From Mytilus edulis (lineage: Eukaryota): 64,000 bases of DNA. The stretch is taken from contig NC_092353.1 of assembly GCF_963676685.1 (NCBI RefSeq), positions 18,290,001 through 18,354,000 on the forward strand, read 5' to 3'. The position numbers and the translations under genes are program-made. Shown piece by piece: positions 25,069 through 63,288 of the stretch. The notes under the pieces were generated by a model that searched no databases, was not told where the DNA came from, and worked only from the letters and a program-made list of their open reading frames with translations. Every line of letters begins with the position of its first letter. The first letter of the stretch is position 1.

Positions 25069-28000
25069 TTATAAGTTATTATGACAGCCATGGATTTCCA
25101 TATTCATGTACGGTTTGTAACTCTTATGCCACGTCAAGGTGAAGAATCGGATAAATCTGGTATCTAACGGTTCGGGTGGATTGACTTGGTGAGCACTGCT
25201 AGACGTGGTACCAGAGAAAGTCTGCAAAATACCAAATAACATTAAATGTCTGATTCTATACAAAAAATACGAATGGTATGGATGACATTATGATCAGATT
25301 AGCTAAATGCACTTCAAAATTATTTATATAATAGATATAGGAAGATGTGGTGTGAGTGCCAATGAGACAACTCTCCATACAAATAACAATTTAAAAAGTA
25401 AACCATTATAGGTTAAAGTACGGCCTAATAAAGTTTTATTGTTTTTACATCTACTTTTGTATCATTTCTAGATTTATATTACCATTATGCATATTTATCT
25501 TTTTAAGAAACTCAGTTTCATTACAATACATCCGTAAATTAATACCTATGTTTACAAACGAAAATACCAATCTCTGAAGTTAGAAATTCGTTAAGCGATT
25601 TTTCGTATTGGCGTTCATAAGAATGCTCTTGCCTAAACAATAAAAATCCAGATATAGACTAAATGAGGGACCTTGTTAGAATAGCCGATCATATAAACTG
25701 TATTTTCCAGTAATCTGGATTTGTTACACTACTTTATAAAATTACTTAGGCTTACTAGGAAAATGTAATAAGTTTGACCATTGCCCTTTTATCAAGCCGA
25801 GGGGAGACTGATGCCTGCCTTCTTAGTTTAAAGAGAAGCGAAAGATACAAGAGGGACATTCACACTCACAAGTCGCAAATAAACTGACAATGCCATTGCT
25901 AAAAAACACCAAAAACAAACCAGACAAACAATATTACACAAAACACATATATAAAACTAAAGACTGAGCAACGTGTCCTGCCCACCAAAAACTGGGGGTG
26001 ATCTCAGGTGTTCTGGAAGAATAAGTTTGACGTGTATTCGTGTTACTGAATGAAAAACCCAAACACCTCAATTTAATCACTTACATATACATTTCCGTTG
26101 GAACTCGATGTGTAATTATGGAATATGTTTCCATCAATGCTATGTTGTATGTAGAAACTGCCAGTATTATAAGCTGAAGGGCTGGAACTTCGACCTTTGA
26201 TTTGAAAGTTGTCTATATGAGATACATTTCCTAAAAGTAAAATTATTGTATTCTAAAATATAAATTCTAGAGTAGCCGTTGATAGCCGAGTATTTTTATT
26301 TTGTGTCTATGGTGAACTGCATTAGCAAATTGAAGACTACATTTGAAATATGTACACATGGTCATAATTGTTTGAACTCTAACATGTACAATGAAGCACC
26401 TCATAAAAACATAATTCTGGAATATGCTTGACGTCATAATCTACTGAATATTCGCAGTTACTAACAGCTAGTTCAAAGCCAATTAAAACTAATTAAAAAC
26501 AAATATCCATCTAATACTAAAATTTGATAAATTCATATCAATTTCCATGTTTGATGATACTTCAATTGTACCTACTATGTGCAAAAAAGATATGTTAATG
26601 GTTTTTTTCTCCATATTTTATAATCTACCTTGATGAGTAACTTTTAATTAACTACAACTCACTATCAAAACAATTCCCAATTATCCCACATTTAAACTTC
26701 CCAGTTGTCCCACAAACATATTCCCGATTGTCCCACGTAATTACTTGTACCTGTAATTTCAAAAAGTGGGACAATCGGGAAGACATCGAACTCTTTTTGG
26801 TTTGTACTCCCAGCACTAAAGTATAGTTCATTTATTTATCAAATGAGTGTCGATTTTCTCAGAACAAGGTGAGAGATGAGGAAAAACCAACATTTGGGTA
26901 ACTACATTTAAATACATATATATATATCAACAGTGTAATTTCCAAAAAAAACCCAACAACAAATATATGCACAATAGGCGAAAAAATTAAGAAATAATTG
27001 ATGCCAGCTATACTTTATTGTAGTTTTAACGTGGGTTGCATTATATTCGTGATTATTTTTGCCAGAGCGATAGCGAAATTAATTTAATTTGTAAATGTTC
27101 CGCCGGTTATTGTAGCATTGGTAAATATGTTCATATCTGATAGAGGATTCCTTGATAAAGTTATGCTGACATTCGACTTGGCAGGAGGGGCCCTTTGACA
27201 GAGATTTATTTATACTTGCGGTAGTCCAAATAATTACGACGTCTGGCAAGGCTATTTTAATTTTTTTTTCTGGGACGCCTTCCTTCAACGGCGTCCCAGA
27301 AAAATAAATAAAATAGCCTTGCCAGACGTCATAATTATTTGGACTAAACTTGCGGTAGCTACACCCTGTAAAGTTGATAAAAGGGCACGTACGTCTTTGT
27401 GCATCTGACGATTTCAAATGCTGTATTACATGATGATTAAAATTAATACCGAGAGACAATCTTGTTGCATTTGTAAAATGGATTGGAAACCTTGGTGGTA
27501 TATTGGTAATTACGCCTATTTTTTTTTTTATAGGAGAATGGGGTTCGATTCCCTGCTTGGGTCAATCCATTTTATCATAAATATGAAACAATTTTGTCAT
27601 TTCAGCTGTACAACAGTTATAATTCACCTATACTTTATTTTATATTTTATCGTCAGATCATATGTTTCAATGAAATTATTATATACATGCCTTTTAACAA
27701 GATAGATGAAACGTGTTTTTCAGTGGGAGGGGTTTTGAAGTTAGAACAGCCAACATGAACGTTGCGGTATCTAGGTCAAATATAATGTATGTCAATTTCG
27801 AATAGTAGCACATTGTTGTCATTGTAAAAGTATTAGTAACAAAATATGTATCATATTTTAGTGTTTGAAAGTGTCCCAAGTTAATGAAATACATTAAATG
27901 CGTATACCAATTTAATAAAATTCATTTTTCTGCCGTGGTCAATATACGCATGTGTAAACTAATTTTATTGGATAATAAAGTACGGTCAATAAAGTATGAT

Positions 28001-31000
28001 TTCTTTACAAAGCTAAAGAAGCATGTCATATTAGAATAAGTGAATAATTCATCATCTACATTTCTTAGCTTAATTTGACAAAATTGAGCCAAACTGGCTG
28101 CTAAAAACGAATTATTATTTCGCTATTTCACTTTCATAAATGTTTGGGAAAAAAACAAGAATGTGTCCTTAGTACACGGATGCCCCATCCGCACTATCAT
28201 TTTCTATGTTCAGTGGACCATGAAAACTCTAATTTGGCATTAAAAATAGAATGATCATATCATAGGGATTATGTGTACTAAGTTTCAAGTTGCGTAGACT
28301 TCAACTTTATCAAAAATTACCTCGACCAAAACTTTACCCTGAAGCAGGACAGACGGATAAACGAATGAACGGACGGACGAACAGACGAACGGACGCACAA
28401 ACCAGAAAACATAATGGCCATACATGGGGCATATAATCATAGTTCAGATTTTTAATATAACTTGTAGCTAGTGCACCTTTTATCAACACTGTGATGCAAA
28501 TACACAATTATTAATCATGGTTAGAAACAGACTTTAAACGCGATAGCACATCGTCATTTGTACGGATATGTTGTTTACCGTGCCCGGAAATTTAGAAACG
28601 ATCCTGGTAAACGTATCGATCCTTTAAATAATTTTTTTTAAAAAGGTAACCAATTCAACAATGTAATTAGATCTTTGAATATTGTTTATCTTTTTATTGG
28701 TATAAATATTATTTTTTTTATCAGTAAACTAAAACCAAACTAAATATTATTCTTATATGCATATGCACTTTCATGGATCTACAATCTGCAGTTATCTGTA
28801 TCTTGGTATTGTGCACGGTCATGTTTTCTTCTGACTGTTTTGACGTATTTACACTAAATCAGTTTGATGTTGGATGTAAACTGATTGATAATTTAGTTTT
28901 AGATACATGATTTTTTAATAAGTTGTTTTTGGTTTTGAATCTTCTGTCAGTAACTGTCAGTACTATCATATCTGTACTTACTGTATTATTGTTGTTGGGA
29001 TGTACAAGTACTCGGTCACGTCCACCCTGTTTATGTTAGATGTATTTCTATTTGTATCCATCTGATGAGTTAGCTTCCATTACCTGATTTTTATAGGTTG
29101 TTCTCATGTTGTGCTATTACTGTCCCAAGTTAAAAGGAAGTTTGGGAGCCCACTTACATGTTTAACCCCACCGTATTCTGTATGTATGTATAAAACAAAG
29201 ATGTGGTGTATTGCCGATGAGACAGCTCTTCACAAGAGTCCAACAGTAAAAGAGTGTTTGTCCCAAGTCAGGAGCCTATGGTTCGGTTGCTATCATCTGT
29301 ACTTTGACCTTTAGTTGTTAATTTCTGTGGCATTTGGTCTTTTTGGTAGTAGAGTTGTCTCATTGGCATTGATCCACCACATTCTCAAATGACAAAGATA
29401 GCAAGTAATGATAGATCACATTATGGCCTAAAACTCATTTGCAAATGGCTTTACTCAATAGAAGTTAAACTATTGTCTAGTGTACCTTGTGAATATTGAT
29501 ATACAACCTCGTCCTATTGCATATGCAATGAATGATTAGAAATTATATCTTCAAACCAAAGAGGCAATTTCAGATTCGTGGTGGTACTAACATAAAATGC
29601 ATAACAATTGTTTCTTTCTATATATTTTACCAACCTAAATCTACTTGTAAATAAGACGTTGAATCCATTCCGTACCATCCACCTGCATTCCATCTTGCAT
29701 CTTTCGCCGAATACGTACTGTACATATTGTATCCTGTTAAACTGGCATCGGGTATAGCTTTGGCGTTTGTTGGTCCAATTAGACTGTTACTGCGACAGTC
29801 TTTTTATGGAGACAATTGGTTAAAATGATAAATTGTATATTAATTAAGCTATATTTGAAATGTTTTTGTTTTTATCTCTTTGAAAATTATTGTTTAAAAT
29901 TGAAAGCTTATATTTGCTAATTTGCCTGTTTTCTTGCTTTTAAGTTCATGGCTCTTTGCGAGCTATTGTTTGCTTTAAAGTTCATCTGGGTCTTTTTGAG
30001 CTATTGCAATTACTTAAAGTCCGTCCTCCGAAGTCGTCGTAAACGTTTACAAAAATTATCTCCTCTAAAACCACTTAGGTCAAGGAATAATAATTTCCTA
30101 CTTCCTTTTGGTCATTTAACCAATCTGTTACCTATTTGATAGTGAAAAACAAACAAACAATGGCGTTTCATATAGCGTAACGCTTTTTGTGATGTTTTGT
30201 GGTACATCTTTCACATAGAACACCACTTTAAATTATGTATAGCGTAAACACGAAATAGGTGATCCTATTATCTTTTAACATCATTGAACGTACATTTACG
30301 TAATGGATTTGAAATTGGAGATTTCATGACTTTTAGATAAATTTAGGAACAGTTTTTGTAGATTTTATGTGCTTTCTTTACAAATGATATGAAGCTATTT
30401 TGATATTTAAGATAATACGTAAGATAAATGTATTTTATATTTGTTTTTCAGTAAAAGTTCTACGAGCTTAAGCTTTACCAAAATCTGTGACATAGTTATT
30501 TACCGTAACTTATCCAATTTTAACTAAATTCCAGCTACATGATTTTAAGATACTTAAAATACTTTTTTGTTTCTGCCATCAAACAAACAAGGCTGCCATG
30601 ACTAAAATAAACTAGAAGGTTAAATCAATTTAAATTGTCTTATTAAAAAAAACCAAGCTTTTGTAGAAATTATGACAGGGCGAAAATGGTCAGAATGCAT
30701 GAACTACCTCCTTTCCTTGATCAGATCACTCCTTTTAGGAGTTATTGCCTATAAATAGCATGTTTTGAATAGAAAAGTTTTTAAGCCTTGACCTATTATC
30801 TTGGAAACTGTTTTGTATAGATAGAAACTGTAAAATGAAAAGTTGGAGCAATAGAAGATCTTCAAAATTGCCTATATGACCGACACCTCTTGATATAATA
30901 AAGGAGCTATTGCCCTTAAATGATGATTTTTCATTAGTTTATGAGTTTGTCTTTTGTTTTGAATAGTTGATAAGAGAATGTCAATCCAGTCTGTTGAGAG

Positions 31001-34000
31001 TCTCATAATGAATCTAATTGTGTTTGGTTTTTTTTATTTGAAAGAGTGAGACATTGTTGGCCTATTATTATTTTATTATTTTGATACGTACCAATTTCAC
31101 ATCTAAGACCACCATATGGGTTGGGACAGTAACACTTGTATCCCGTAGTTTCATCTAAACAAACGCCTTGATGGACACAGGGTTTCTTTGTGCAATATAT
31201 TATTCCTAAGTAAGAAAGAATAAAATGTCAAGATATGGTTGTTTTTTATTTGTTATTTAATGTACTTATATCAGGAATCAAAGTTCGATCAGTCTGTTTT
31301 CAAAAAAGCATATTTTGGAAAGCATGTCTTGGAAAAAATGAAGTAGTTCAGAACAAAAATGCACCGAAAAATGAAATATGCTTACCACGGGTAACAATTT
31401 TGAATACACTATCAGCAAAATGACCATGTATATCTGTAGCTCTAATTGTTATTGTGTAAGTGGCGTCAGAATCCGGAATCAGTCCATGTATTCGACCGGA
31501 ATCAGGTTCTAGTTTTACCCCAGGTGGTAACATTCCGGCTACAATAGCATACACAATCGGTTGTCCTTCCGGATCCTACAACGACATAATGTTAACTAAA
31601 CTCACATTAATATATAGTTTTCTTATGAGACAACACAATTTTTTTTAATCTGATACATAATTTTGTACTTTGGAATTTAATGGTTCTTTAGGTAATTTTA
31701 TTGGAGTGCAAAAGCGTGGACCGAAGCACATTTTTTATGTAGCCCGGAAAAATCTATAAGTTTTCGACCTGACAATTCTAATAATAACATTTATATGCTA
31801 TGATAATGAATTTATGAGAGAAAATCAAGTTTTAAAATTTCATTTGTTCTCCTGTGCAGTGTTATCACGATGTCATGATAATCACTTATGCTCCGTTTAA
31901 TAAGATTTTCAAATAGATATAAGAAGATGTGGTATTTATTGCCAATGAGACAACTCTCCATCCAAATCACAATTTGTAAAAGAAAAACAATTAAACGCTA
32001 AAGTACGGTATTGAATACAAAGCACTAGCTCACACCGAACAGCAAGCTATAATAAAGGGTCCCACAATGACTAGTGTTAAACCAATGAAACTGGAAAACC
32101 AACAGTCTAATCTATATACAAACGAGAAACTTTTAAGAACAACATCAACAAACGACAACTACTGAACATCAGATTCCAAACTTAGAACAGGTGCAAACAA
32201 ATGCACCGGGGTTAAACGTTTTAATAGGTAACATTCTTCACCCTTACCCAGCCAATAGTATAATATAGGAAGACACACTATAAAATGTCAATTGAAATGG
32301 CTGAACTCAATCAAAAGGCATAGTAACACAAGTGCACATACATTGAACGGAAACATTTGATCTATGAGACAATATAAATACAAAAACAAATTAAATAAGT
32401 TTTGAATAAATAAAGACAACAGTAGTATACCGCTGTGAGATGTTGAATAATTTCAGAAAGTCAACCATAAAGGCTCGAATATATGTCTACAGATTAATGA
32501 TCTTTAAAAGTGTAAAACATGCCGCCATGTAGTTTCAGAGGATACGATTTTTAAAATTGACGTACTGCTTCTGGCTTTAATTCTTTTATCGGATCAGAAC
32601 CAAATGTCAAACATTTGAATGAGACCTTTTATACAATTCTATTTTTTATTTTGCATGCATTGCCTATTTATTGGTTAAATGTTTTAGCCTTTCAATGACA
32701 CAGTCTTCAGTGTTCCTATAATATATGATTGAAAATAAGAGTTGTAACACATACCATTTAAAAAATGCATTTACATAATTTATACCTTAGCTATGACGTT
32801 TACATCTATTTTGTCTCCTGCGTGAAATTCTCCAATATATCCAAACGTAGAATGTTCTTCCCAGATAGGAGGTTGACTCAGAATCAGCTGAAATGAATTG
32901 AAATCAATTTGGGCCAATAATGAGAGCTTGGTATAGGGTATAACCAACTGCTCGCATCGTTTTCACACCTCTGTCTGACCCACAATTGATTTTTTTCCAT
33001 TTGTTCACTCATATTTGCTTTTTGTTTCTCAGTAAACACACAAGCCTAATCTTGCAAAAATAAATGTATTTGTTTGTGTTACACAATTATTAAAATGCAA
33101 CCAACTTCACAATACTTCGTTATTATATTAAAATTTTGTCTTTGGCAATTCATAATTTTACTATAACAATTGCCAAAGACAAAATTTTAATATAACAATT
33201 GTCAAAGACAAAATTGTAATATAACACTTTCAAAAAACCAAAATGTGTTCTTGCTTATTTTTTATACAACCAAACACTTCAAAAAAATACATTTAAAATA
33301 TAGCTAATATTTTAATTGTATATTGTTAGTTTTTTTAACGTTTTATTTGTTTATGTTTAAAGTATCAAACTAAGGGGTAACAAAACTTGATGTTCGTATC
33401 TGACAAACGTGCAATGTATCGGCAGTTGTGAGTGGTCATTCTCTTATCATTTGAGTTGTCTAGCTTTCCCCCTTGAGGTAAGTTCAGCTGTACAGTTTAC
33501 TGGCATTTAAATAAGTATTCGTCTTTTTTCTAGTAGAGGAAGACAATTAGGATGTTCTTTCTCCATCATTCCTTTACAAGTTATAACTCAGTCAAAGGTG
33601 ACCTAAGATGCATTTGGCCATTATTTGAAGTTCCTTTTTATATAGCTCTGTAACTGTTTCGGTCTTTATGCATGCTTGTCTTTCAAATATTCAATATTTA
33701 GATGGATTCATGACAAAATTGTGTTTTGGTGATGGTGATGTGTTTGTAGATCTTACTTTACTGAACATTCTTGCTACTTACAATTTTCTCTATCTATAAT
33801 AAACTTGGCCCTTTAGTTACAGAGGAAAATATTTTGTGAAAAATTTACATAATTTACCAAATATTAATGAAAACTGTTAAAAACTGACTTTAAAGGGCAA
33901 TAACTCCTTAAGGGGTCAACTGACCATTTTGGTCATGTTGACTTATTTGTTGATCTTACTTCAGGGCAGATAAAGATTGACTTGATAAATAATTTAACCC

Positions 34001-37000
34001 CTCGTCAGATTTGCTCTAAATGCTTTGGTTTCAGAGAAAAAAGCCAAAATCTATATTTTATCCCTATGTTTTATTTTTAGCCATGGCAGCCATCTTGATT
34101 GGTGGGCTTGGTCACCGCACATATTTATTAAACTAAATACCCTAATAATGAGTGTGGCTAAGTGTGCTTAAATTTGGCCCAGTAGTTTCAGAGGAGAAGA
34201 TTTGTGTAAAAGATTACAAAAATTTACGAAAAATTGGTAAAAAATAACTATAAAGGGCAATAACTCCTTAAGGGGTCAATTGACCATTTTGGTCATGTTG
34301 ACTTATTTGTAGATCTAACTTTGCTAAACATTATTGCTGTTTATAGTTTATCTCTATCTATAACAATATTCAAGATAATAACCAAAAACGGCAAAATTTC
34401 CTTGAAATTACCAATTCAGGGGCAGCAACCCAACAACCGGTTATCCGATTCATCTGAAAATGTTCAGGGCAGATAGATCTCGACTTAAGGTAACACGATA
34501 CCGAATGACGTTACGCCACGAGTTACCGTTCCTGACGTTATCGAATAACGTTCACACAGACAAGCCAATGTAGCAGGTTTTCACAAAGTGATTAAATGAT
34601 AAAAAAGAAATATTTTTGATTACTATGTGACATTTTTAACGGTAACTTTTTCTAGATGCAGAGTGCCGAGAGTTTTGATGCAATATATAACGGTTAACTT
34701 ATTTGCTTTATCGTTTTCCGGCAATTCTACTACTCATCGTTAATCTTGTATTAAAAATGTATTACATTACTTTTAAATATTCTGTTTCTTTAATATTTAA
34801 GCATCTGAAAGATTTATCTATATATGTTCTTATGCATAATAGACTGAGTTTTATCACTTTATTTTATTCTTGGTTTATTTTTGCAATAAATACTTATTCA
34901 TGATGCACGCCGTATCCCCATCAAAATTCTGTTTTGAAAATAGAAATACAATCTATAGAAACTTAGTATGATGTGTAATAAACACTGGCAATTGTACATC
35001 TATTAATTCTTGTTATAAAAATGGTCGTTTAAAACACCGCTCGATCAAAATGGAAAAAGGAAATTTATTTGGATGAGAATACGGATAGAATTAGGCGAGA
35101 AAAACACAATACAAGCAGACTTTGAAACTCATACAGAAAATAGTTTGTTAATATGGAATGCAAAGAAATGGTTTAACATGGTAATTTTGCCTAATGACTT
35201 TCTCTGTGTTCCAGTATAAACAGTCTCTGAAATTCATTGGTTGTACAGAGCAAATCCGATATAGTTTCGGAAACATTTTAAAAATAAAGTGCTAGATTTG
35301 TAGTCCTATAGACAGTTGATAGTCGGGACCGGCTCTAATCAGACTGGTTCCGTTACAAAATTTTCTCTCGAAAAAACGACTGACTAATTATTATTCAAAC
35401 GGTAGAAAGAGACTGAAATAGCTAGATCTTGAAATCATTTAGATTTTATATTCGTGTTAATTTACGCTTGCATGGGTATTCGGTGGTAGTGTGTTTTTCA
35501 GTTTGTGTGATTAGAGATGGAAATAATTATATATAATGTACATGTACAAGTTCGGAGACAAAACGACTGGAAGAGAATTAACATTATAGTTGCCCTTTTA
35601 GGCCCTGAGGGGCATATTGCTCACATACTAGGCGTCGGGAAAAGCCTGAGTTTTTAGAACAAGCATGCAGCTTTCATGTAGATCTATATACATGTAAAAA
35701 AGAACTGTATGTATTTCTTTGTGTGGATAAATATACTATATATATGTTCATTGTTATATAAAATGTATTTGTACTAGCTTTAGAAACACGATGCAAAGCG
35801 AGACTCGCCGAGTTTTCCACTTGTTTCGTAGTGAGTACAAACACGCTTTATATTTCTGACAATGTACATAATTTTTACATTTTGTTTATATCCTACAATT
35901 TACACCCCAAGGGTGACTAGAGATGGTCACTTGGTCTTATTTCGACCGGCAGTAAAATGCTTTCAAAGTGGGGCGTCCATTTGGCTGTGCGGGTTGTATT
36001 GTCTATTGTTAACTTGTTCTCGTCCTGAACATGCATAAAATATTTGCCACTGGACGTTAATCAACCAGCAATCAATCCTACAATTTACAACCATCACTTG
36101 AAACTTTAGTTGTTAAAATTTAGATTCAAAGAAATCAACAAAGTTTGCGAACATTTACGCACAAAGAATTATCTACGTTACCGCTTGCTCATTATGGAAG
36201 CGGGGCAACATGAGACTTTATTTGTAAACGTACAAATACAAAGAAAAATATATGGAATATGTTATATGTACAACAGTTGGCTGTTAGTATGATAAACGGA
36301 GATATAGGATATGCAATTAATAAGAAATCAACATCTGGACATTTAACGACACCAAAACCAAAGACATCAAGCAAATTGTGACTAATGCTTATTGGACGAG
36401 TATCTTTTTATTTCTAATTTGTAGTTTTAGTAAACGTTGGGCTCTAAATTGGAGAGTTTTGATAAGTTTATGGAGTATAATTATCACAGTAACATTTCAG
36501 TCTCTTAGTACATATTTCTTTAAGTCTTAAAGTCTCTTAGTACATATTTGTTTAAGTCTTAAAACTTTTGTTCTTCTGGAGAAAATTCAAACAAATTGAA
36601 TATTGAAATAAGGAGGTGCGGTAAAATTGCCAATTAATCAACTTTCCCCCAAAGAAAAAATGACTGAAATGTTAGCTTGCTCACATTGCTACTTCATTTT
36701 AGATCTCCATATTACCTTTCCGTTATATGAACTGCATATTCAAAAATATGTTTTGTCACCAAAATCCTAATAGAGCACATATATCATCATATAGTTTCAC
36801 CCATGTCCGTTCGTAGTCTTTTTGCTTCAGGTTTAAATTATGTACCTGGTGTTACTACTCATATTAAAGGTGCGCATATCGTCTGGGTTTTCTTTATTTT
36901 ATGTTCAGGAAAGGTTGCTGGATTATGCATTTTAATAAAATATAAAAGGCACGCAGAGTACAGACTCCGCCTTACATCTCCAACATGTGGAATTTCAAGC

Positions 37001-40000: not shown

Positions 40001-40902
40001 AGGTGGAGTTACTAGCATTGGACTGAAAAGTATAAAGTTATTATTCCTTATATTCCATATTAAGGAAAAGGGCAATTGTCACTATATACATGTAGAAAAA
40101 AATATATAGTTTTCTCGTTTGAATTGTTTTACATTTGTCATTTTAAAGCTGAGTATACGGTTTAGGTTTTACTCATTGTCGAAGGCCCTACGGTGACTTT
40201 TGGTTGTTAATTTCTGTGTCATTTGGTTTCATGTGGAGAGTAGCCTCATTGGTAATCATACCACATCTTATTATTTATATATATATATCCTGTTCATTAT
40301 ACAGAAAAAAATAACACAAGTTTGGATGTGATGCACTTTACACGTGTTCATTAAATGACGAATTTTTGTTAGATCATTGACGTGCATATAGGCCTCGCTT
40401 ATTGCAATACCATAAAGAACGGAATTAAAATGTACAATGTAAAGATATAAAAAAATAAAATTGGCGACTCTTTCAAAAAACATAATTATTACAATAAACT
40501 TGACTTGACGGTTAATTGAACTGAATTTTTTTCACAAAATAGAGCTGAAGGATATCAAAGAAATATTCAATCTCATGCATGCAAGTCGAAATCCAACTGA
40601 CAATGTCATGACCAAAAATGAAATGCAAAAGACGACTAAATTACAGACCAGTATACAAAACATAACATATAAAACTTAAGGCTGAGCAACACAAACATAA
40701 TCAAAAACCAGGGGTATTTTTATTTATGTGGAAGATTGTTTGTAAAATGAGCCGCCTTTATTAAAAGGGGCAAATAATGCAATCCAGATTACTGGCTACA
40801 ACTTTAAATATTATAAGTAACTTACTCAAAATTAGTTTGTGATGAAATAATGGAAACAAGAGAAAATCCAAACAGAACAACAAGCGCCATCTTGGCAGCC
40901 AT
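25069..40902 (-). CDS. Paralog A: secreted protein, cubilin-NTD-like segment + He_PIG-like Ig domain + EGF + F5/8 type C domain (365 aa, 9 exons)
   Basis: Exons 40902-40826 (MAAKMALVVLFGFSLVSIISSQTNF), 40022-39956, 39402-39319 (SNNGDIKIGYNETGKVIFDNEDLNYIIQ), 32887-32786 (LILSQPPIWEEHSTFGYIGEF..), 31575-31386 (DPEGQPIVYAIVAGMLPPGVKLEPDSGRIHG..), 31205-31092 (EGF CTKKPCVHQGVCLDETTGYKCYCPNPYGGLRC), 29799-29635 (CRSN..IPDASLTG..GWYG..YLQVDLG), 26230-26085, 25221-25069 (..DTRFIRF..MNMEIHGCHNNL*). All GT-AG with consistent phases, 1098 nt. Exon sizes 67/102/190 are identical to the paralogs. Confidence 0.88.
27222..27346. mobile_element. 125-bp foldback MITE with TAG..CTA termini and ~9-bp TSD (AcademH-/MuDR-/hAT-like), intron 7 of paralog A
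   Basis: Near-perfect ~57-bp arms TAGTCCAAATAATTACGACGTCTGGCAAGGCTATTTTA..CTGGGACGCC / GGCGTCCCAG..TAAAATAGCCTTGCCAGACGTCATAATTATTTGGACTA with a 10-nt loop. Flanks are TACTTGCGG (27213-27221) and AACTTGCGG (27347-27355). Confidence 0.8.
28155..28432 (+). mobile_element. HINE/DINE-1-like (Helentron-derived) non-autonomous repeat
   Basis: AACAAGAATGTG start after an A-run, internal (GACG/GGAC)n microsatellite and short 3' palindrome (GGCCATACATGGGGC), as typical of bivalve DINE-like repeats. Confidence 0.5.
33575..38620 (+). mobile_element. HINE/Helentron-like repeat with internal tandem subunits, split by the Kolobok-like insertion (parts ~33575-34488 and 38311-38620), intron 3 of paralog A
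   Basis: Internal duplicated block TAAAGGGCAATAACTCCTTAAGGGGTCAA at ~33890 and ~34250. The sequence resumes after 38314 in register with the 33961-34200 subunit. (GAC)n microsatellite and terminal hairpin GCTCACTTGGTCCTTTGGACCAGGTGAGT at 38589-38617. Confidence 0.65.
34489..38310. mobile_element. Non-autonomous DNA transposon, Kolobok-like (copy 2, 3822 bp), in intron 3 of paralog A
   Basis: Same 19-bp TIRs, TTAA TSD at 34485-34488 and 38311-38314. Colinear with 717-4633 but with many substitutions and indels. Confidence 0.85.
38685..39025 (+). mobile_element. Single retrozyme-like monomer (same family as 12945-13400)
   Basis: Reverse-complement homology to 12945-13400 (GATGCCACTGCTGG, CCCAGTAGTCAGCAC, AATCCTGGTA) plus a hammerhead motif near the 3' end. 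Confidence 0.7.
38937..38982 (+). ncRNA. Minimal type I hammerhead ribozyme motif, probably inactive (C3->A)
   Basis: TGTCA-aTGATGA-GTCT-TATGA-AGAC-GAA-AC-GCGC-GT-C-TGGCG: core UGAUGA and GAAA, stem II GUCU/AGAC, palindromic stem III ACGCGCGU, GUC cleavage triplet, stem I UGUCA/UGGCG. Confidence 0.7.
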
Positions 40903-50131: not shown

Positions 50132-51773
50132 TTACAAAATACATCCGTATAGTTCAACTTTCATACAAGGAACATATTTAGCATTGTATGAATATGGGTG
50201 AAATCTAACAAATCTCGCAGTTGTAACATCCTGTAAGCTAGAATATAGTCTTCCAGATCGACCGGGAAAAACCTGAAAAAAAGTTCTATCAAATTATACA
50301 ACCTTTAACAGGAGTATATTACAAATCTGTTTATACCAATGTTAGACTATGTACAACTTAAACAGTTTTCTGAACATACATGTTTACACTTGACTTATTA
50401 TGAAGTACAGTGGATTTATTATTTTTCCTGTGTTCAAATTTTCGTTGATTGAGGAAACTTTGTATTTTCGTGGATATCTAATTTCGTGGTTTAATTAAGG
50501 TCTGCATACAAGCCTATAGAAAATTTGTACTTCATTAAACTTTTAAATTCGTGGTACACCTATAACCACAAAATCAACGAAAATTGGTATACCAGTAATA
50601 CTTAAGAATCCACAGTATTTATCAAACGTGTTCTCAAGATAAAAATACAAAATAGCCCCAGTATCATAAGTCTGAAAGTAAATGTATGCTTACGATTGGT
50701 GAGGTCCCATTTTTAATAAATTGAAAATGTTGACCGTCCGTGCTGACCGATAGTTGGAATGATTCTGTCAGATACTGGGAGCTGTAGCCGAACATAGTGA
50801 CACCAGCTATCTTAGAACGGTTACCTGGAAAATAAAGTATATGTCTTCACATAGTAATGAATTATTGAATGTAACTATACAAAAGCGGGATCATTTTTGT
50901 TTATTATCGTACGAAAATCAGAATCATGTTTATCTTTTCTTTAATTGATGCGTATTTTACTTATATTATTGAACATGTTGAAATAGTCATGTTCATTCTC
51001 ATCATGCGGTCATTTGTTTACACAGTGTCTCGCTTACTAGAGCAAACGACGTCTGCACAATTGTATTTTCTCAAATGATACTGTTTGTTCTAAGATTGCT
51101 TTCGAAATATGTTTCATGAAATGAAATAGAACAATAAATAAAATAATAAAAGTGATAAAAAAAATATTTACCTAGATCGACCTGAAGCCAGGAATTAGCA
51201 TTTTCTCCACACCAACCCTTTTCTTCACTGTCAAGACGAGCTTCAGTAGCATTTGACATTTCGTGTGATAGATATGCCGACAGCTGAGCATCTGGGATTT
51301 TTGAAGGAAGAGAAATGCCTACTTCGCTCTGTCTACAATCTGAAATGAACTCAACACGTAAAAATGATTTCATTTGCTTTTCATTGTTTAACTATTTTTG
51401 GAATTTGGATAATCTGGTCGTTTCTGACTATTTTTTGAAAATTTATAGATGCACAATGAGGTAAAAAATAAACAATAATTTTTCATACCTAACCTCTCTA
51501 AGGATATCTCACACTACAACAGTGTATTAGGTTAAAAGAGCAGGACGTTGATGAGAGAGTAAATATGGTTTGATGGGGAAATGTGTCAAAACGGTAAAAT
51601 TATTGAAGGCGAAGGGTATAAAATTTACTGTGTACCTGTGCTGCAGTCTTTTCCGCCGTAGAAATCGGCACAAACACATTCGTATCCTTTACCGACATTT
51701 GTCTCGTTACATAAAGCACCATTATGACAAGGTTCATATTGACAATGCTGTAACTCTGTAAATAGAAATATTA

Positions 51774-51806
<33 letters not shown>

Positions 51807-53517
51807 ATGAATATAACTAGCTAGTGTATGCAAAACATGCAGAAATAATATTTTATCAAAGGCTACCACAATTTTGTGCTATATATGAAGAGTTTGAAAA
51901 TTTGTTTAGACATTTGACTTTTGTTATAGACAGTCGACTCCTAATAATATATATAACGAAAACATTTACAACATTCCCCCAAAAAATAAGAAACACAAAA
52001 ATTAGACGGTACGACAGATCAACACAGCTACAAATCGCCTTATCTTCACAACGAAAAATATGGCCTCACCGATAGTTTCCATTTTGAAAACTGCATCTTC
52101 AAACCTTCCCCGAGATCCAGTAGCACGAATAGTAAAGCTATACTGCGCATCAACGTCTGGTGCTATGCCATATATCCTACTTCGATCTGATTCAAGATGT
52201 ATTCCTGGAGGGAAATCTCCAGCGACAAGGCTAAATTTTATGCTTCCTCCAGATGGTTCCTTAAAAAAAATAATCATAGTTTATATGGCATAGTTATACA
52301 AATAAAAGTTTAAAACATTACATACTTATTATATGAGTGTGTGTGTACGATTTGTTTACATTACAAATATGTGACAATAAATATTCACAACTCCATTTAT
52401 TTACTGTGTTATTTGAAAAATTTCACATTAGAAACAAAAGGATGAAGTAAAATTCTTACCTTAACTTTCAACGGTATATCAACCTCTCTGCCGCCTTCAT
52501 ACGTTCCAACAAAACCTACATGTGAATGGTTTATCCAAATCGGTGGTAAACTGTACACGATCTGAAATTATAGTAAATGGGAAATTAGTAATTCATAGTA
52601 ATTGTATTTCAATGTTAAAGAAACGTTCAAGAATGCGACAAATTATTCGAATTAGATCTTTAATTGCGTTATCTACATAAATTAAATTTTCTCGACATTA
52701 CTACAAATTAAGTTGCAGTAAAAAAAATTATATTATCTAGAATTAAGGGTTAATACGCGAACTTTGCAACAATGTTTGAGTGATAACGTTTTTCACCAAT
52801 ATATAAAGAAAATGAAAAAATAAAATAAAATCTGCCATTGAATCATTTAATAGAATCTCCATAGTATGATATTGACACATCGATTAGATCCCTGCACAAA
52901 CCTTAACTATCTCTAATAAATCGATGCCTTCAAAATAAGCTGTCCCTGTGCCATTTCCTGGATTGATGTGGATATCTCCATTTAGTCCGGACTGAAATTA
53001 CAAAATCAGAGGTTTTGCTTACACTAATAATCAAACACATTGAAATATTAATTAACCTTACTGTATGAATTTTGCGCAGAAACTATTTTGAATAATGACG
53101 TCAAGCTACAAATCCAGAAAGTATCTATGTAGCAATATAAAGTTTAAATTCACTATTTTCCCTAAAATTATCAGAGTATAGTATTTACCTCAGCTGTTAA
53201 ATTTCCCTTTTCTTGTGCAGCTACTGTTATACTTGGATAGTTCATTTGCAACACCCTAAAATCAAAAGATAATCAATAAGTATATCAAAGAGAAAAATTG
53301 AATTCATATTAAAAGTTTTACACATATAATTTTAACATTTACTTTACTTTACTACATTACATATCATATTTAGCATTCGAAAGTCGATTCGGTAATATTA
53401 AGATCTTTATTCCAAATTCTGTTAAAGTGATTGGTATAAAAAATTTACTCACTCTCCTTTAGATCCCGTAGTTATCCATATTTGTTGTAGAAAAACGAAA
53501 ATCAAACACAAAATCAT
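50132..53517 (-). CDS. Paralog C: secreted protein, cubilin-NTD-like segment + He_PIG-like Ig domain + EGF + F5/8 type C domain (357 aa, 9 exons)
   Basis: Exons 53517-53453 (MILCLIFVFLQQIWITTGSKG), 53255-53189 (VLQMNYPSITVAAQEKGNLTAE), 52991-52902 (SGLNGDIHINPGNGTGTAYFEGIDLLEIVK), 52561-52460, 52259-52070, 51755-51636 (EGF CQYEPCHNGALCNETNVGKGYECVCADFYGGKDC), 51339-51172, 50824-50694, 50272-50132 (..TARFVRFHP..PCMKVELYGCIL*). All GT-AG, 1074 nt. AATAAA at 50054-50049. Confidence 0.9.
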
Positions 53518-56987: not shown

Positions 56988-59900
56988 TTAGCATCCATAA
57001 AGTTCGATTTTCATGCAGGGATAATATCCACTTCTGTATCCCTGAGGATGATACCGTACAAATCTCGCAAGTGTAGGACTTGGTAAACTGTCTGTGTAGG
57101 TGCTCTTCCCGCCACGGAATGTCTACAACAAAAATTTTAAAATGATTGTGGTGATGGTCAAACTTTAAATTTCATATCTAATACGATATCAATATATAAT
57201 ATGTAGATATTAAAGTCTTAATCCACATAGTTTAAAGAATTCTTTATAAATAATATTTACATAATATTATAGATATTCAACTCGATTTTAAAACATGCCG
57301 TCTGTAATATGAATAAAAATATAGCAGGAGATGTGGTAAGTCCCTAAATATAAAACAAATATTTAAACACTTGAAAGAAATATGATTTGCTAACATTACA
57401 GTAAAAATAATTACATGGATACCACTGGTATCATTGACGACTTTGAAGTTAACGCCATCCAAACTGACTGACAGAGTATAACCATCAACGTAATAGGTGC
57501 TGCTTTGGTATTGATAAAGTGTTTTGTACACTGTCTTTGGTTCTCCTGAAGAACAAAATTAGTTAGAATTTATTGTAAGATTGGTTATGTATTTGTAGTA
57601 ATTTATTGTATAAATGTTCACCTTAATTTATGGTTGTAACACTAGTATAAACAATTTCTTGATATCACTGAACCGTTCTTATTAATAAGAAATAGTTAAC
57701 CAAAACGGTACTAGAAATTTCATTACAACATGAAATAATTAATTCCCAGCAGTTCTGACAAATATGTTTTAATTGTAATATAATAATAACTACCTGTTAC
57801 TTTTCAATATGGTTTTGACCTACCCGTGTATTGAAACTTCGAAACAAAGGTAACATAATTATTACTTTACCCAAATCGACCTGTAACCAAGCGTTGTCAT
57901 TTGTACCACACCAATAACTACTCCCTGAATAACGTCCATTAGAAGCCAGTTTAGTCGACTGTGACAAGTAAGCTGACATTTGAGCATCAGGTATTTTATT
58001 TTTATATCGTACACCAAATGCATTGTTTCTGCAATCTGTGGAAAGATAACAATGAAATGAAACTTAATTGGTCATAAATTGTGATTCGTTATAATACTTG
58101 CACCAATAATCCAATTAAGAGACGCAATTTCTGCAAAAAGGTATATGAAAGGATATTGGATAAATGATTAACAGTTATTTCAAATTCAATCCTCTCATTC
58201 GAAAAAGCAAGAGACCCTTTGTAAAGTACAATGTGCGCGCAGTTAGTGCTACTACCAATATATGCGTAAATCACTCGTAAAATGACATTCAATTCAAAAC
58301 CTAAAATATTCCCGAATACATTTTGAAATAAATCAAATAATATCAGTTATACCAAAGTTTAACTCCAGTAACAAAGACGAACTATATTTTTGTATGTAAT
58401 TTCTTCTATGGAAAACGTACTGTAAAAACAATGCGCTATATAAGATCATACAATTACCAACCTATTTCACAGCTATGTCCACTGTAAGGTTCAGGACATA
58501 CACATGTATAAGTATTGTTGCTATTATCTATACATGTGCCATGGTGCTGACATGGACTTGACTTACAGTTGTCATGGGCTAAAATGAAAACGTTGTGATT
58601 ATCTATTACTTTTGAATAAGTTCTTTTAATCATTGTTCTTGAGAATTCTTTCTTTTATTTCCCAAGATTGTTACTTACTTCTTTGCAAATGAAATAATTT
58701 TAAGGAGTACTTGATATAAGGATTTTGAATTGTTGATAATTTATTTTAGAACTTTCTTTATACTATTGAATCATTTCGCAAACGTTAGTTTCGAAATAAA
58801 AAAAATGTCCGCAATCATACTCAAAATTGTTTAATTTATACACAGATTTGTTCCTTTCAATTCAATTAAAGTGGGGAACACATTATAATTGTTTTTATTT
58901 TGTTATTTCACAACAAAGATTTTGATATAGCCTTTGATTTGTTGCACAAACAATCAACAACAACTACAAAAAAAAACCACAAAAATCCCACACACGTTTC
59001 AACAAAAAGTACAATTTTAAAACATAACAAAATATATTGTCTATAGTATATGTATATCTTATTAAGAGGGCTACAAATCAGTTTTTAATCAGTCTCGTTT
59101 AAGGTCATACGATACAGTATTGCACCTGTATTGACAAGTTGATGAAAATTTGCATATAGGCTATTTTTTACCTCATTAAATCAAATATGTAATAAAAAAT
59201 ATACCGTCATGTGCTACTTTTTGAGTAAAATGAGTTCGAAATTTTGTATATTTGCTCAAAATTCAGATTTGTGTCCGTATTTTCTTTTTCGAAAGAAAGA
59301 CATAACTTTTTTGTTTTAAAAGATAAACACAAAGTGGTTTTTGTTAAATAATCGGTAATTTCTGTATTTTATAAATATTATTACAAATTATGCAATTTTT
59401 ATTCCGAAATAACTCTATATTTATCAAATGTTCATGAATAGAGGAAAAAACGTCATTTTTTGCTGCATGTTTATCAAAATTAAAAACATTGCGCTATTTA
59501 CAGTTTTATAAAATTTGGGTCACATAAACTCCTTGCAAAATGAAACAAATTGCTGTAAATAGGGGTCCATGCACTCGTTTTCAAATTAAATCAGTTTGAA
59601 TGGTAAAAATCAGTCGACAAATGCATCTTTTCCCGATATGTCAGAGTTTGACGTCGCGAAAATAACATTTTACGTTAGCAACGTCATTACATTCCCTGTT
59701 ATTAGATTAGATTGTATTTTAGTGTTAATTATCCATGTGCATTTTACTGATTCATGTCATGACTTTACATGTACAACCAGTAAAATGACAAACTATCACT
59801 GTTTCATTAAAGCTAATTTGAGATGTTTTTAATTAGAACAGATTTCATGAGTCCAACATTAGTTTTTATGATCAACAGCATTTCTTAGATGACTTACAAA

Positions 59901-62900
59901 GAACTTCCATTTTGAACACAGAATCAGCATATTTCGTTTGATTGTTGATGGCTCTAATAGTAAATGTGTAGAAACGTTCAATGTCAGGAACTACACCATT
60001 TATAAAGCCACCCGTTTCATCAAGAGTCACACCAGTTGGCAAGTCTCCACCCACCAATTTGTATTCTAATGGTCCATTTTCAGGATCCTGCAAATAAACA
60101 AAAGTCGTTAAAAATAAAATATGTATACAACTATTTTACCATAAACTTCTGTAATCCACCAAATGATTTACCATCATGTGCTGTGGAGTTAAAAATCCCT
60201 AAGATCTTTTTTAATTGAATAGGGGCTAATAAAATGTAAAAGAATGCATTTGAAGAATATTTAAATATATAGACAATACTTACTCTTGCCTCTAATTTAA
60301 CATGGATTCGCTGTCCGCCATTAAATGTTCCAAAGAATCCGTTGTGTGCATGAGGTAGCCACACTGGAGGTAATGTTTTTGCCATCTGTTCAACATGTAA
60401 TACAAAGAAAACACAATTTAATGGCGTAAATGGTATAACGGATTATACTATATCTATTTAATTTATAACCTGTGAGTATCATCTTTGTTTATATTGTAAA
60501 GGAGTTACTCGAATACAACGTGACAAGCTGTTCACTGACTGTAGCTTATGCAATCAAACAGAGTTGAACATCATTCTAAGATGATAACTTTAGTCATCAA
60601 GGGTTTTATCAAGTTTCTACGATTGAAAACTGACATCATTATTATTCGGTGTGAGCCAAGGCTCCGTGTTGAAGACCGTACATTGACCTATAATGGTTTA
60701 ATTTTATGAATTGTTATTTGGATGGAGAGTTGTCTCATAGGCTTTCATACCACATCTTCCTATATCTATCATTTCCAACGCCTCGTGCCTCATATAGGGT
60801 GAGTACATTCATATGGGTCTATGTGAACTTGTAACAAATGGTTCAAGCGGCCATAAACGACAAAGTGTAAGGCACAATGCCATAACTTGTTCAACATTCT
60901 CTCATATTTCAGTGGCAGTAGAGTGTCTCGCCTTCTAACGCGACCTTCTTTGCGGAATAGACCTTTTGTAGTAATTGATAATTGTACACATTATTTCAAT
61001 ATGCATGACATATTTGACAGTGATCGTTAACTGAAAAATAAATCAACTACCTTTTTTTCAATCAAAGAGGATTTTTGTTACCTTAATGATCTCCAAAATG
61101 TCTTCTCCATCAAATATAACTTTCCCGCCTGGTCCAGGCTCCAGATATAAATCTCTTGCAAGCCCAGACTACAATGTAAGTGCATATTAATTATCAAACT
61201 AATTTTTATACTCTTTGTTTATAATAATTGACACAAGATACATGAACAGTTTGCAGAAATCATTGGTTTAAATGTACAGTACAATTTTACTCAAATGTTG
61301 TATGCTATGCAACGATTGTTATTAATCGTTCTAAAACAAGGCTTTTTTTCTTAAATTTGATTCGTACACATCCAACTGATAATTAGAAATTAGTTGCTGG
61401 AAATAAGTGATATCTTTTGCACTTTATTTGCAATAGTTTATATGTTTAAACGGACAAGAAAACAAAGTAACTGCTATTAAGGTACCATTGTTGTAAATCA
61501 AGTTTTAGGTTGGGTTCGTGTTGCTCAGTCGTTATTCTTCTATGTTGGGTAGTAAACTGGTGTTTGCCATTGATTCGTTTTTTGCCTCTGCATTGTCAGT
61601 TTATTTCCGACCTATAAGTTTGAATGTCCCTATGGTATGTTTCGTTGTCAGTTTGTTTTAGATTTATGAGTTTGACTGTCCCTTTGGTATCTTTCGTCCC
61701 CCTTTTTTTCGCCTCTCTTATATAAAAAGCTATCAATGAGTGTATTTTTCTGTGGTTAAACTCCCATACTTAGATTTTTGAATATTTTATAAATATTTTT
61801 TTGCATTTGGCTCATTTATTTCTTTCCATTTTAAATCTAAAGGATATAGCGGAAACACTATTGCTCCCTTTCAAATAAAAAATCTTTTACCTGGAGCGTA
61901 ATGTTTCCTGTATTCTGTGCCTTTACTGTCAAATGTGGTACATTTATATCTAACACCCTAAAATATAAAAATACGATTAACTGTAGTTATACTTATTCTT
62001 CTTTTTGATGTTAAGCTTGGTTTTGCTGGGTAGAGGGTATATTATCCACCATCCATAATTTATAATATCAACCATATACAAGTACATATAAACACTTAAC
62101 AGGATCTGCTTACCCTTCCGGAGCACCTGAGATCACCCCTATTTTTTGTGTTCGTGTTGCCTTTTCTTTAGTTGTCTATGTTGTGTCATGTGTTCTATTG
62201 TTTTTCTGTTTGTCTATTTATCTTCTTTCATTTTAAGCCAGGCGTTGTCAGTTTACTTTCGATTTATGAGATTGACTATCCCTTTGGTATCTTTCGTCCC
62301 TCTTTTAACTATATACACGTGCATTGGAAAGTAAAGAGTTAAAATGTGTATGAGCAACTTGTAACATAGTCACATATACTCAAAATATGCAGTTTAAAGC
62401 AAAAAGGCAGATGTTTAGATTTAAACGACTGACATAGACAAACACAGATTGTGACAAAACCAGTTTAAATTCGATAGCGAAATGTACTCTTAAAGGCTTT
62501 TTCCCTCAAATTTGATTCGTACACATCAAACTGATAATTAGAAGTTAGTTGCTGGAAATAAGTGATGTCTTTTGGACTTTATTTGCAACTGTTTATATGT
62601 TTAGGGTTAATCCTGTCATCTTATTACTTTAAAAATTGTGTGCTCGAAACACTAGTCATTAGGTACATTTGTACGTTCATAAAAAAGATTGAAATCCAAG
62701 TATGTAAAAATTCTGAAATAATCGACGGCAATTTCAATAAAATGGACACAAAATAACAAATACATCCTAAGTCAACTTTGCCCGAGAGAATGGATCTAAA
62801 GTTTCTTTCAATTTTATTCTACATTTCAACAGAGAATTTAATAAATGTATGTATTAATCATTTTAGTATCAAAGCAATTACTACTGGGCTGAATATATCA

Positions 62901-63288
62901 TCAGTGACTACTAATTTACCAGACCATCAGCTGAATCGACCCAGCACAAGACAATGAGAATAACACGTTATAAATTTGGTTTGTCGGAAGTGCTCTTCTG
63001 CATCAAAAACGTTCAAACTTAATGAAATTAAGCAATGATGTATTATTACTTGAATGCATGATGTTATTTTACAAAAAGGGACCCGAAAGAATAGCTAAAT
63101 TAACCCAAGGTCAATATCGCCCGAGGGAGTTATCACCGTAGCTTAAAATTGTATATGTTGTTAGTATGATTTTTAAAAATGTACGTTACAATAGATATGA
63201 TACACTGTTAAACGTAAATTATTCGAACTCACCCATCATCAGCTGCACTTTTTGAGAAGAATATCAGTAAAACATACAATATCTTCAT
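56988..63288 (-). CDS. Paralog D: secreted protein, cubilin-NTD-like segment + He_PIG-like Ig domain + EGF + F5/8 type C domain (349 aa, 9 exons)
   Basis: Exons 63288-63233 (MKILYVLLIFFSKSAADD), 61957-61891 (VLDINVPHLTVKAQNTGNITLQ), 61168-61082 (SGLARDLYLEPGPGGKVIFDGEDILEIIK), 60385-60284, 60087-59898 (DPENGPLEYKLVGGDLPTGVTLDETGGFING..), 58578-58462 (EGF CKSSPCQHHGTCIDNSNNTYTCVCPEPYSGHSC), 58035-57871, 57545-57415, 57122-56988 (..LARFVRYHP..PCMKIELYGC*). All GT-AG, 1050 nt. Confidence 0.9.
62098..62306 (+). mobile_element. Short copy of the 3' tail of the Penelope-like element (non-autonomous derivative)
   Basis: CAGGATCTGCTTACCCTTCCGGAGCACCTGAGATCACCCC...CTTTCGTCCCTCTTTT is nearly identical to 19345-19547. 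Further decayed copies at ~25830-26020(-), ~40540-40715(-), ~42715-42950, ~55860-56027 and ~61505-61720. Confidence 0.8.

Follow-up and report, generated by a model that had tools for sequence, protein, structure and literature searches.

What do the paralogous genes crowded into a 64,000-nucleotide stretch of the Mytilus edulis genome (hereafter, the window) encode, and how might their products act? The overall reading that we favor, with a probability of roughly 0.55, is that they belong to a five-gene cluster for trimeric discoidin recognition or adhesion proteins, assembled via a cubilin-type module.

A tandem cluster of five paralogs

The window covers most of a tandem cluster in which five genes encode secreted modular proteins of around 355 amino acids each. 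Six-frame self-comparison and splice-site inspection yielded four nine-exon gene models in the window, A(-), B(+), C(-) and D(-), with clean reading frames and at the places where a preliminary description of the sequence had put them. They encode proteins of 363, 355, 357 and 349 amino acids, respectively, with 36–50% identity between paralogs. In each, the phases are consistent, the CDS length is divisible by three and the number of in-frame stops is zero. As the frames are intact and orthologues exist in other species, we rejected the explanation that these are pseudogenes or chance open reading frames.

Gene A (25069..40902, minus strand) consists of exons 1 to 5 at 40902-40826, 40022-39956, 39402-39319, 32887-32786 and 31575-31386 and exons 6 to 9 at 31205-31092, 29799-29635, 26230-26091 and 25221-25069. 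The donor of exon 8 is ambiguous, as both 26091 and 26085 keep the frame, the latter giving a protein of 365 amino acids. Intron 3 spans 6.4 kb with a repeat inside, which explains the position of exons 1–3 at 39.3–40.9 kb, where they were located with small exon HMMs. Gene B (42415..47241, plus strand), with Pfam matches per exon, comprises exons 1 to 5 at 42415-42470, 43110-43176, 43517-43606, 44214-44315 and 44653-44842, followed by exons 6 to 9 at 45365-45478, 45939-46096, 46405-46545 and 47092-47241. Its intron 7 has a GC donor, and the M. galloprovincialis protein is continuous over the same junction. Gene C (50132..53517, minus strand) is composed of exons 1 to 5 at 53517-53453, 53255-53189, 52991-52902, 52561-52460 and 52259-52070 and exons 6 to 9 at 51755-51636, 51339-51172, 50824-50694 and 50272-50132. 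For gene D (56988..63288, minus strand), exons 1 to 5 lie at 63288-63233, 61957-61891, 61168-61082, 60385-60284 and 60087-59898 and exons 6 to 9 at 58578-58462, 58035-57871, 57545-57415 and 57122-56988.

The preliminary description counted four genes. All four are real, but a fifth paralog, gene E (plus strand, 354 amino acids), was missed; it occupies 63662..64000 and runs beyond the window end. Exon 1 is found at 63662-63717 and exon 2, at 63969-64035, is split by the window end, while exons 3–9 follow 2–8 kb past it. Their positions in L001 (to which 63000 is added for the window-equivalent coordinate) are 3181-3267, 4867-4968, 5493-5682 and 6035-6148 for exons 3 to 6 and 7560-7717, 8325-8471 and 9234-9377 for exons 7 to 9. 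When the whole genome was scanned, the exon 5 profile returned exactly five copies, all within the cluster, and the exon 3 profile likewise returned the five cluster genes only. Exons 2, 4 and 5 measure 67, 102 and 190 nt in all of genes A–E, so that the conservation of these exons, described earlier for four genes together with their phases, extends in size to the fifth. In B and E, intron 7 is a phase 0 intron at WLQ|VD; in A, C and D it lies 16 nt later and is in phase 1. Two pairs, A/B and D/E, are arranged head-to-head. The divergent intergenic regions, 40903..42414 (1512 bp from start codon to start codon) and 63289..63661 (373 bp, measured in the same way), are both candidate bidirectional promoters.

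Domain architecture

Each of the proteins A–E consists, in this order, of a signal peptide, an N-terminal module of approximately 55 amino acids, a He_PIG domain, an EGF domain and an F5/8C (discoidin) domain of the animal type, one of each. Past the signal peptide, all five are devoid of TM-like stretches. Searches with the window sequence were run exon by exon and full-length analyses were carried out on the database orthologue P0190 and on alignment A3. The exon-by-exon Pfam scans confirmed He_PIG (PF05345), EGF (PF00008) and F5/8C (PF00754). The signal peptide, the absence of a TM segment and the single EGF and F5/8C domains reported before all hold. The domain order reported before also stands. 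He_PIG is a cadherin-like domain. The 102-nt and 190-nt exons together make up this domain, the former encoding its N-terminal strands rather than a separate segment. In eight family members, PF05345 scores 36–47 bits against a cut-off of 24, and exon 5 by itself reaches 36.6 bits in B and 26.4 bits in D. Every family member tested shares one above-threshold PF05345 domain with known He_PIG proteins. Here, however, it occurs as a single copy in a small secreted metazoan protein, while the best-scoring database proteins are giant and carry many repeats. Indeed, an HMMER search of the whole library with the exon 5 profile retrieved giant multi-repeat proteins only and no orthologues.

The EGF domain exceeds the PF00008 cut-off, and exon 6 has six cysteines in all five genes. 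A, B and E carry the cbEGF motif C-x-[DN]-x4-[FY]-x-C, as do 26 out of 29 relatives, and C and D lack it. When family members were scanned against Pfam, no CUB domain was matched. There is one F5/8C stretch per protein, with 82.4 bits for PF00754 in P0190 (cut-off 28.2) and partial matches on exons 7–9 of B and D; its terminal cysteines, C208 and C351, are invariant in 29 relatives. The discoidin fold is closest to neuropilin-1 b1 (Z 24.8; rmsd 1.3 over 145 residues; 34% identity). It is shared, at 27–34% identity, with neuropilin b1, CASPR2, DDR and the C2 domains of factor V and VIII, but the domain context of these proteins differs from that of the family. By reading of the sequence, the ligand-binding loops also appear to differ in length from those of the known domains; hence, their ligands should not be transferred to the family.

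Relatives and their misleading names

The family is real and conserved, its members having a signal peptide and no TM segment, as had been proposed, and it has relatives across molluscs and in a hemichordate. Among bivalves, at least 12 named species have full-length members, and others come from a chiton, two abalone species and the hemichordate Ptychodera; the orthologues were reached via P0184, a database protein of 223 amino acids that reads through short introns. Compared exon by exon, gene B is identical at 335 of 352 positions (95%) to P0190, a RefSeq protein of M. galloprovincialis that bears the name ‘lactadherin-like’, and all junctions are in register. For gene E, the identity is 93% to P0203, a 354-amino-acid protein from a 1248-nt Logan contig. 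The best exon-by-exon matches of the other genes are P0213 and P0196 from scallop for A (47–50%), the scallop protein P0215 for C (46%) and P0199 (55%) and P0215 (49%) for D. P0203 and several other relatives have their whole CDS on intronless contigs of 1.2–2.5 kb, which are likely mRNA-derived, as the genomic genes have eight introns. One contig of the scallop Ylistrum carries four paralogs, of which the A-type and B-type have consecutive LOC numbers. The phylogenetic tree resolves four paralog types, with A and C/D as sister group (99/97) and a B clade (98/95) that includes Solemya.

The preliminary description called the family uncharacterised and did not recognize its architecture. In the literature on oyster K1S079, Mytilus ‘lactadherin-like’ and bivalve discoidin/He_PIG proteins, a functional study of the family was indeed not found, but full-length molluscan members are already present in NCBI and UniProt under the automatic names lactadherin-like, EDIL3, MFGE8 and Caspr5-2. 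These names would suggest true bridging monomers of the lactadherin/EDIL3 type, in which the discoidin domain binds phosphatidylserine and an RGD-bearing EGF domain binds integrins. The likeness behind the names is that lactadherin (MFGE8) and EDIL3 (Del-1) are secreted too and have EGF followed by F5/8C, and the discoidin domain of the family does resemble lactadherin C2 and factor V/VIII C2. Yet, lactadherin and EDIL3 have two to three EGF domains, an RGD and two discoidin domains, compared to one EGF and one discoidin domain here. They lack He_PIG and a trimerisation module, and neither He_PIG nor the N-terminal module is part of the EDIL3 architecture (PMC9290575). RGD is absent from every exon of A–E and from 29 relatives, and among solved structures, neuropilin b1 rather than lactadherin has the discoidin domain closest to that of the family. 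Because of the single discoidin domain and the lack of RGD, we rejected membership of the lactadherin/EDIL3 group, and such bridging monomers are a highly improbable account of the family. The four automatic names are unsuited to its architecture and, left uncorrected, would misdirect functional guesses.

A probable cubilin-type trimerisation module

The N-terminal module is encoded by exons 2–3 (43110..43606 on the plus strand in gene B; equivalents at 40022-39319 in A, 53255-52902 in C and 61957-61082 in D). It is built from three repeat units, each about 11 residues long and of the type G-N/T-hydrophobic-x-hydrophobic, with a short helix behind them. No Pfam match was obtained for it, and an Atlas feature search returned one unnamed cluster at 0.77, under the useful range. 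Its conservation (0.63) equals that of the folded domains (0.61–0.68). As a monomer in AF2, the module has a pLDDT below 50, with residues 13–61 lacking a confident fold. When three copies of P0190 residues 20–82 are modelled together, a trimer is predicted with an ipSAE of 0.84 (0.84, 0.84 and 0.85 in separate runs) versus 0.02 for the best control, in an alignment-free prediction by a tool that was calibrated on two copies of microbial proteins and in which memory of a solved complex could yield a pass. The predicted trimer has a pLDDT of 85 and at least 96% of its contacts are common to the runs. Inter-chain contacts are offset by approximately 10–11 residues over residues 30–62, and the helix makes contacts at 66–76. 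This contact topology equals the one described for cubilin residues 36–135, which form an intertwined triple beta-helix with a coiled coil (PDB 6GJE; PMC6283879).

Sequence similarity points in the same direction, being weak but specific and linked to human cubilin through an exon of mussel cubilin. An HMM of the family N-terminal module, run against 50 kb upstream of the CUB array of mussel cubilin, gave one match (21.8 bits, E 1.5e-5; next match E 1.7), with unrelated DNA scoring at most 5.6 bits and 20 shuffles at most 8.0 bits. The sole PDB match of the matched N-terminal exon of mussel cubilin is human cubilin, 6gje_B (E 3.9e-4). Alignment of the family module and the cubilin exon with hhalign reproduces the register of the HMM match (E 6.3e-4, at a probability of only 28%). 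Direct searches were negative: family exon 3 did not find cubilin in the PDB, either as profile or as single sequence, single family exons had no PDB matches, and the Ptychodera protein did not match the mussel cubilin exon in BLASTP. In both cubilin and the family, the segment lies at the N-terminus right after the signal peptide or pro-peptide, with about three 11-residue turns, then a helix, and EGF downstream. The remainder differs, as cubilin has eight EGF and 27 CUB domains in about 460 kDa, whereas the family proteins, at about 38 kDa, combine He_PIG with a single EGF and a single discoidin domain. Moreover, the module sits in one exon in mussel cubilin and is split by an intron in the family genes.

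Taken together, gene models, domains, conservation and distribution of the family are shown directly, and the N-terminal module probably is a cubilin-type intertwined triple beta-helix, a reading supported by structure prediction and weak homology. The Gly-rich beta segment of about 50 amino acids in the preliminary description is more specific than described there and most likely a trimerisation beta-helix of the cubilin type. This reading is what is new, the family members themselves being database-listed already. The authors of the cubilin structure considered the intertwined beta-helix an unexpected receptor architecture, the only likeness that they described being with phage tailspikes and type VI spikes (PMC6283879). 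If the reading is true, the cubilin module would be a reusable animal trimerisation device, and amnionless may have further partners.

From monomeric lectin to a proposed trivalent assembly

The preliminary description suggested a mucosal lectin, an opsonin or a shell or byssus matrix component as possible roles. With a cubilin-type module, a trivalent assembly would take the place of a monomeric lectin. Acting like the N-terminus of cubilin, the module would hold the subunits together as a trimer by intertwining three chains into a three-turn triple beta-helix, with a short coiled coil after it. Such a trimer would present three He_PIG-EGF-discoidin arms and might serve in extracellular recognition or adhesion as a trivalent molecule, with avidity arising from the three discoidin heads. 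Mixed trimers are plausible, since the paralogs form two head-to-head pairs (A/B and D/E); we infer such heterotrimers, as we do ligand class and tissue. The family would then be a conserved, unstudied group of trivalent proteins for recognition, in animals dependent on innate immunity.

Secreted and potentially multivalent proteins could also have a structural rather than a recognition role, as components of shell, byssus or some other extracellular matrix. Biomineral matrices do contain EGF- and discoidin-bearing proteins, such as EDIL3 in the avian eggshell (PMC9290575). However, the family has a member in a hemichordate, an animal without shell or byssus, its sequences are devoid of the repetitive or low-complexity tracts that matrix proteins typically have, and the papers searched yielded no proteome match. 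A matrix role seems improbable.

The trimeric recognition proteins that we propose may, alternatively, not be free in solution. As in cubilin, the open end of the beta-helix could dock on the transmembrane protein amnionless or a relative, turning the trimers into cubam-like endocytic or scavenger receptors in which discoidin heads replace the CUB arrays. The N-terminal module of the family resembles the amnionless-docking part of cubilin, and the strand before the helix turns, with the motif Y-P-x-V, is strongly conserved. An amnionless gene is present in the mussel genome (G000:C3:18.183-18.187 Mb), and all five proteins are missing a membrane anchor of their own. In Drosophila, CUBAM unites amnionless with two cubilin paralogues (PMC8710305). 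On the other hand, contacts between amnionless and cubilin mostly involve the main chain, so sequence offers little guidance, and the extra N-terminal hairpin could merely cap the beta-helix. We regard docking and the receptor role that goes with it as rather unlikely.

A joint reading, equally tentative, would regard the cubilin beta-helix as an old, portable metazoan module and the family as a second, discoidin-headed class of amnionless clients that is cubam-like, its A/B and D/E heterotrimers being set by the gene pairs. Collagen IV genes are paired as well, and offer a parallel for gene pairs that set the subunit mix.

Five Paralogs in One Cluster

A six-frame self-comparison of the window revealed a set of 8 or 9 stop-free translation blocks that recurs four times from 25 to 63 kb. 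Splice sites were placed manually using acceptor and donor lists, and small HMMs made from the exons of genes B, C and D served to find the diverged exons at the upstream end of gene A. The models for gene A (40902 to 25069, minus strand, 363 aa), gene B (42415 to 47241, plus strand, 355 aa), gene C (53517 to 50132, minus strand, 357 aa) and gene D (63288 to 56988, minus strand, 349 aa) comprise nine exons each, with consistent phases, a CDS length divisible by three and no internal stop. The four nine-exon paralogs of the preliminary description, with their orientations, are thereby borne out, as are the sizes of exons 2, 4 and 5 (67, 102 and 190 nt in all four genes). Its total of four genes has to be revised, as a scan with an exon 5 profile detected a fifth paralog, gene E (plus strand, 354 aa), of which exon 1 lies at 63662-63717 and exon 2 starts at 63969 and continues beyond the window end. 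The remainder of gene E was modelled on the adjoining DNA (L001), giving again nine exons with the 67-, 102- and 190-nt exons kept. Genome-wide, exactly five copies of the exon 5 profile occur, all within this cluster. The genes are ordered A-, B+, C-, D-, E+, with A/B and D/E as head-to-head pairs (1512 and 373 bp between start codons, respectively), and the paralogs share just 36-50% identity.

The introns of genes A to D are GT-AG throughout, with the sole exception of gene B intron 7, a GC-AG pair following exon 45939-46096 (donor from 46097). P0190, the "lactadherin-like" Mytilus galloprovincialis orthologue of gene B, continues uninterrupted across this junction. Intron 7 is located at a WLQ/VD boundary in B and E, and 16 nt further downstream in A, C and D. 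For exon 8 of gene A, the donor is either 26091 or 26085, both in frame. Intron 3 of the same gene measures 6.4 kb and bears a repeat of about 4 kb that occurs twice in the window (600-4700 and, within this intron, 34400-38400). Translated segments of the two copies are 60-90% identical, and the repeat is probably a transposable element. At 7294-9303, a 41-nt unit is repeated 49 times in tandem (83% matches).

Relatives, Expression and Cluster History

In a whole-library HMMER search, the exon 5 profile retrieved only giant He_PIG proteins with many repeats and no orthologues. When the open frame surrounding exon 5 of gene B was used in a word-based search, exon-sized fragments at about 80% identity came up, and a 223-aa database protein from this fragment cluster (P0184), which reads through short introns, was long enough to reach full-length proteins. 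Searches from P0184 and then P0190 gathered relatives of around 355 aa carrying He_PIG, EGF and F5/8C domains in bivalves (Mytilus, Argopecten, Ylistrum, Pecten, Mizuhopecten, Saccostrea, Magallana, Mya, Mactra, Ruditapes, Dreissena and Solemya), in the chiton Liolophura, in Haliotis and in the hemichordate Ptychodera (31-35% identity). Their automatic database names include lactadherin-like, EDIL3, MFGE8 and Caspr5-2. Lactadherin and EDIL3, however, carry a pair of discoidin domains, several EGF domains and an RGD motif. The present family has single discoidin and EGF domains as well as two modules missing from lactadherin, and an RGD motif was found in none of the family proteins. The database names are therefore misleading.

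Gene B is 95% identical exonwise to P0190 with all junctions in register, including the GC-donor one, which assigns the window to a Mytilus-like mussel. Gene E is 93% identical to P0203, a 354-aa protein from a Logan contig. For P0203 and several other relatives, the whole CDS lies on Logan contigs of 1.2-2.5 kb, while the genomic genes have eight introns; hence, these contigs appear to derive from spliced mRNA, an indirect sign of expression of the family and of splicing in line with the models. Public annotation already lists the individual genes; new are the recognition of the family as such, its conserved five-gene cluster and its probable cubilin-type module. No functional study of the family was found in the literature.

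Exonwise best hits and a maximum-likelihood tree of 29 relatives sorted the genes into four paralog types. Pteriomorphs, heterodonts and the protobranch Solemya are all represented in the B type (support 98/95), the E type is a grade at the base, and the A and C/D types are sister groups (99/97), in agreement with the shifted intron 7 common to A, C and D. As a single Ylistrum contig of 1.73 Mb harbors one gene per type, with consecutive LOC numbers for the A-type and B-type genes, the gene content indicates that the cluster is older than the mussel-scallop split. C and D seem to stem from a later duplication. Old duplication and continued selection, as proposed at the outset, are supported.

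Domain Composition and Predicted Structure

The window sequence was searched exon by exon, while the database orthologue P0190 was used for the full-length fold. Exon-by-exon Pfam scans assigned He_PIG to the 190-nt exon, EGF to exon 6 and F5/8C to exons 7-9. In full-length relatives, the He_PIG match begins as early as residue 75-88, within the stretch encoded by exon 4, so that the 102-nt exon encodes the first He_PIG strands and not a separate segment. Exons 2 and 3 encode about 55 residues to which no Pfam domain was assigned. Beyond the signal peptide no transmembrane-like stretch occurs, as the preliminary description had stated. The EGF domain has six cysteines, and a calcium-binding motif in A, B and E. 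In genes C and D, exons 7 and 9 each contribute an extra cysteine; gene A of the window lacks both. The exon 9 cysteine is common to scallop A-type and C/D-type proteins, and both extras are present in the scallop C/D-type protein P0215; this points to a possible further disulfide within the discoidin domain of that subgroup.

In an AlphaFold2 model of P0190 with the family alignment, the confident regions are He_PIG (88-168), EGF (172-205) and discoidin (208-352), and residues 13-61 have a pLDDT below 50. The discoidin domain is nearest to neuropilin-1 b1 (Z 24.8, rmsd 1.3 over 145 residues, 34% identity), followed by factor V C2, CASPR2 and DDR, and a profile search of PDB sequences concurs.

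A Probable Cubilin-Type N-Terminal Module

In the N-terminal module, a helix follows three repeats, each of about 11 residues. Its conservation (majority-residue frequency in 27 molluscan sequences) is 0.63, compared to 0.61-0.68 for the folded domains and 0.32 for the signal peptide. Its likeness to cubilin was tested by complex prediction and by a sequence link. Three co-folded copies of P0190 residues 20-82 scored 0.84 (runs 0.84, 0.84 and 0.85), whereas the best-scoring of three controls had 0.02; this reaches a mark attained by 21 of 30 proteins solved as one-chain pairs and none of 23 solved as single chains, a calibration that is only roughly valid for three copies, and the pass may reflect memorisation of a solved complex by the predictor. 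The partner pLDDT is 85, and at least 96% of contacts are common between runs. Across residues 30-62, residue i is predicted to contact i±10-11 of its neighbours, and helix positions 66-76 touch as well. This modelled pattern corresponds to a beta-helix of three intertwined chains with a coiled coil after it, the same arrangement as in cubilin residues 36-135 (PMC6283879).

The mussel cubilin gene was located by CUB matches at G000:C2:58601520-58695309 (plus strand, at least 30 CUB exons over 94 kb). An HMM of the family N-terminal columns, run against a six-frame translation of the 50 kb upstream (L006), gave one match on the cubilin strand (L006:5643-5807, plus strand; 21.8 bits, E 1.5e-5; runner-up E 1.7), 44 kb upstream of the first CUB match. 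Controls reached at most 5.6 bits on unrelated DNA and at most 8.0 bits over 20 shuffles of the same region. Searched against the whole PDB, this exon matched human cubilin chain 6gje_B alone (E 3.9e-4), across the beta-helix strands. Aligning the family with the cubilin exon by hhalign gave the same register (E 6.3e-4), with a probability of just 28%, and family exon 3 had no match in the PDB, whether searched with the four window copies combined into a profile or with the gene D copy alone. Homology of the family module to that of cubilin is thus probable, not proven. The beta-helix is encoded by one exon in mussel cubilin, but split over two in the family. As the family proteins have no CUB domains, they are not cubilins, and the common ground appears to be the trimerisation head only. 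The intron directly after the cubilin N-terminal exon contains a long open frame (L006:6410-7954; G000:C2:58558410-58559954, plus strand), in which reverse-transcriptase-like motifs were read by eye from the translation and which is probably a LINE insertion.

Proposed Mode of Action

The proteins would be secreted, with the N-terminal beta-helix locking three chains together, and the trimer would display three He_PIG-EGF-discoidin arms that bind a repetitive surface of glycan, lipid or collagen-like ligands, at high avidity. Trimeric collectins, ficolins and C1q-domain proteins work in this manner with head domains of other kinds. Mixed trimers of paralogs are plausible, given the two head-to-head pairs and Drosophila CUBAM, which is reported to combine amnionless with two cubilin paralogues (PMC8710305). 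A live alternative to the freely secreted trimer is a cubam-like receptor anchored by amnionless, since the cubilin beta-helix doubles as its amnionless-docking part, the family proteins carry no anchor of their own and the mussel genome has an amnionless gene. The latter lies at G000:C3:18183278-18186534 (minus strand), where three exons match PF14828 above the cut-off. A fourth, weak PF14828 match is found on the chromosome of the window itself, 16 Mb away (G000:C10:34438509-34438661, plus strand).
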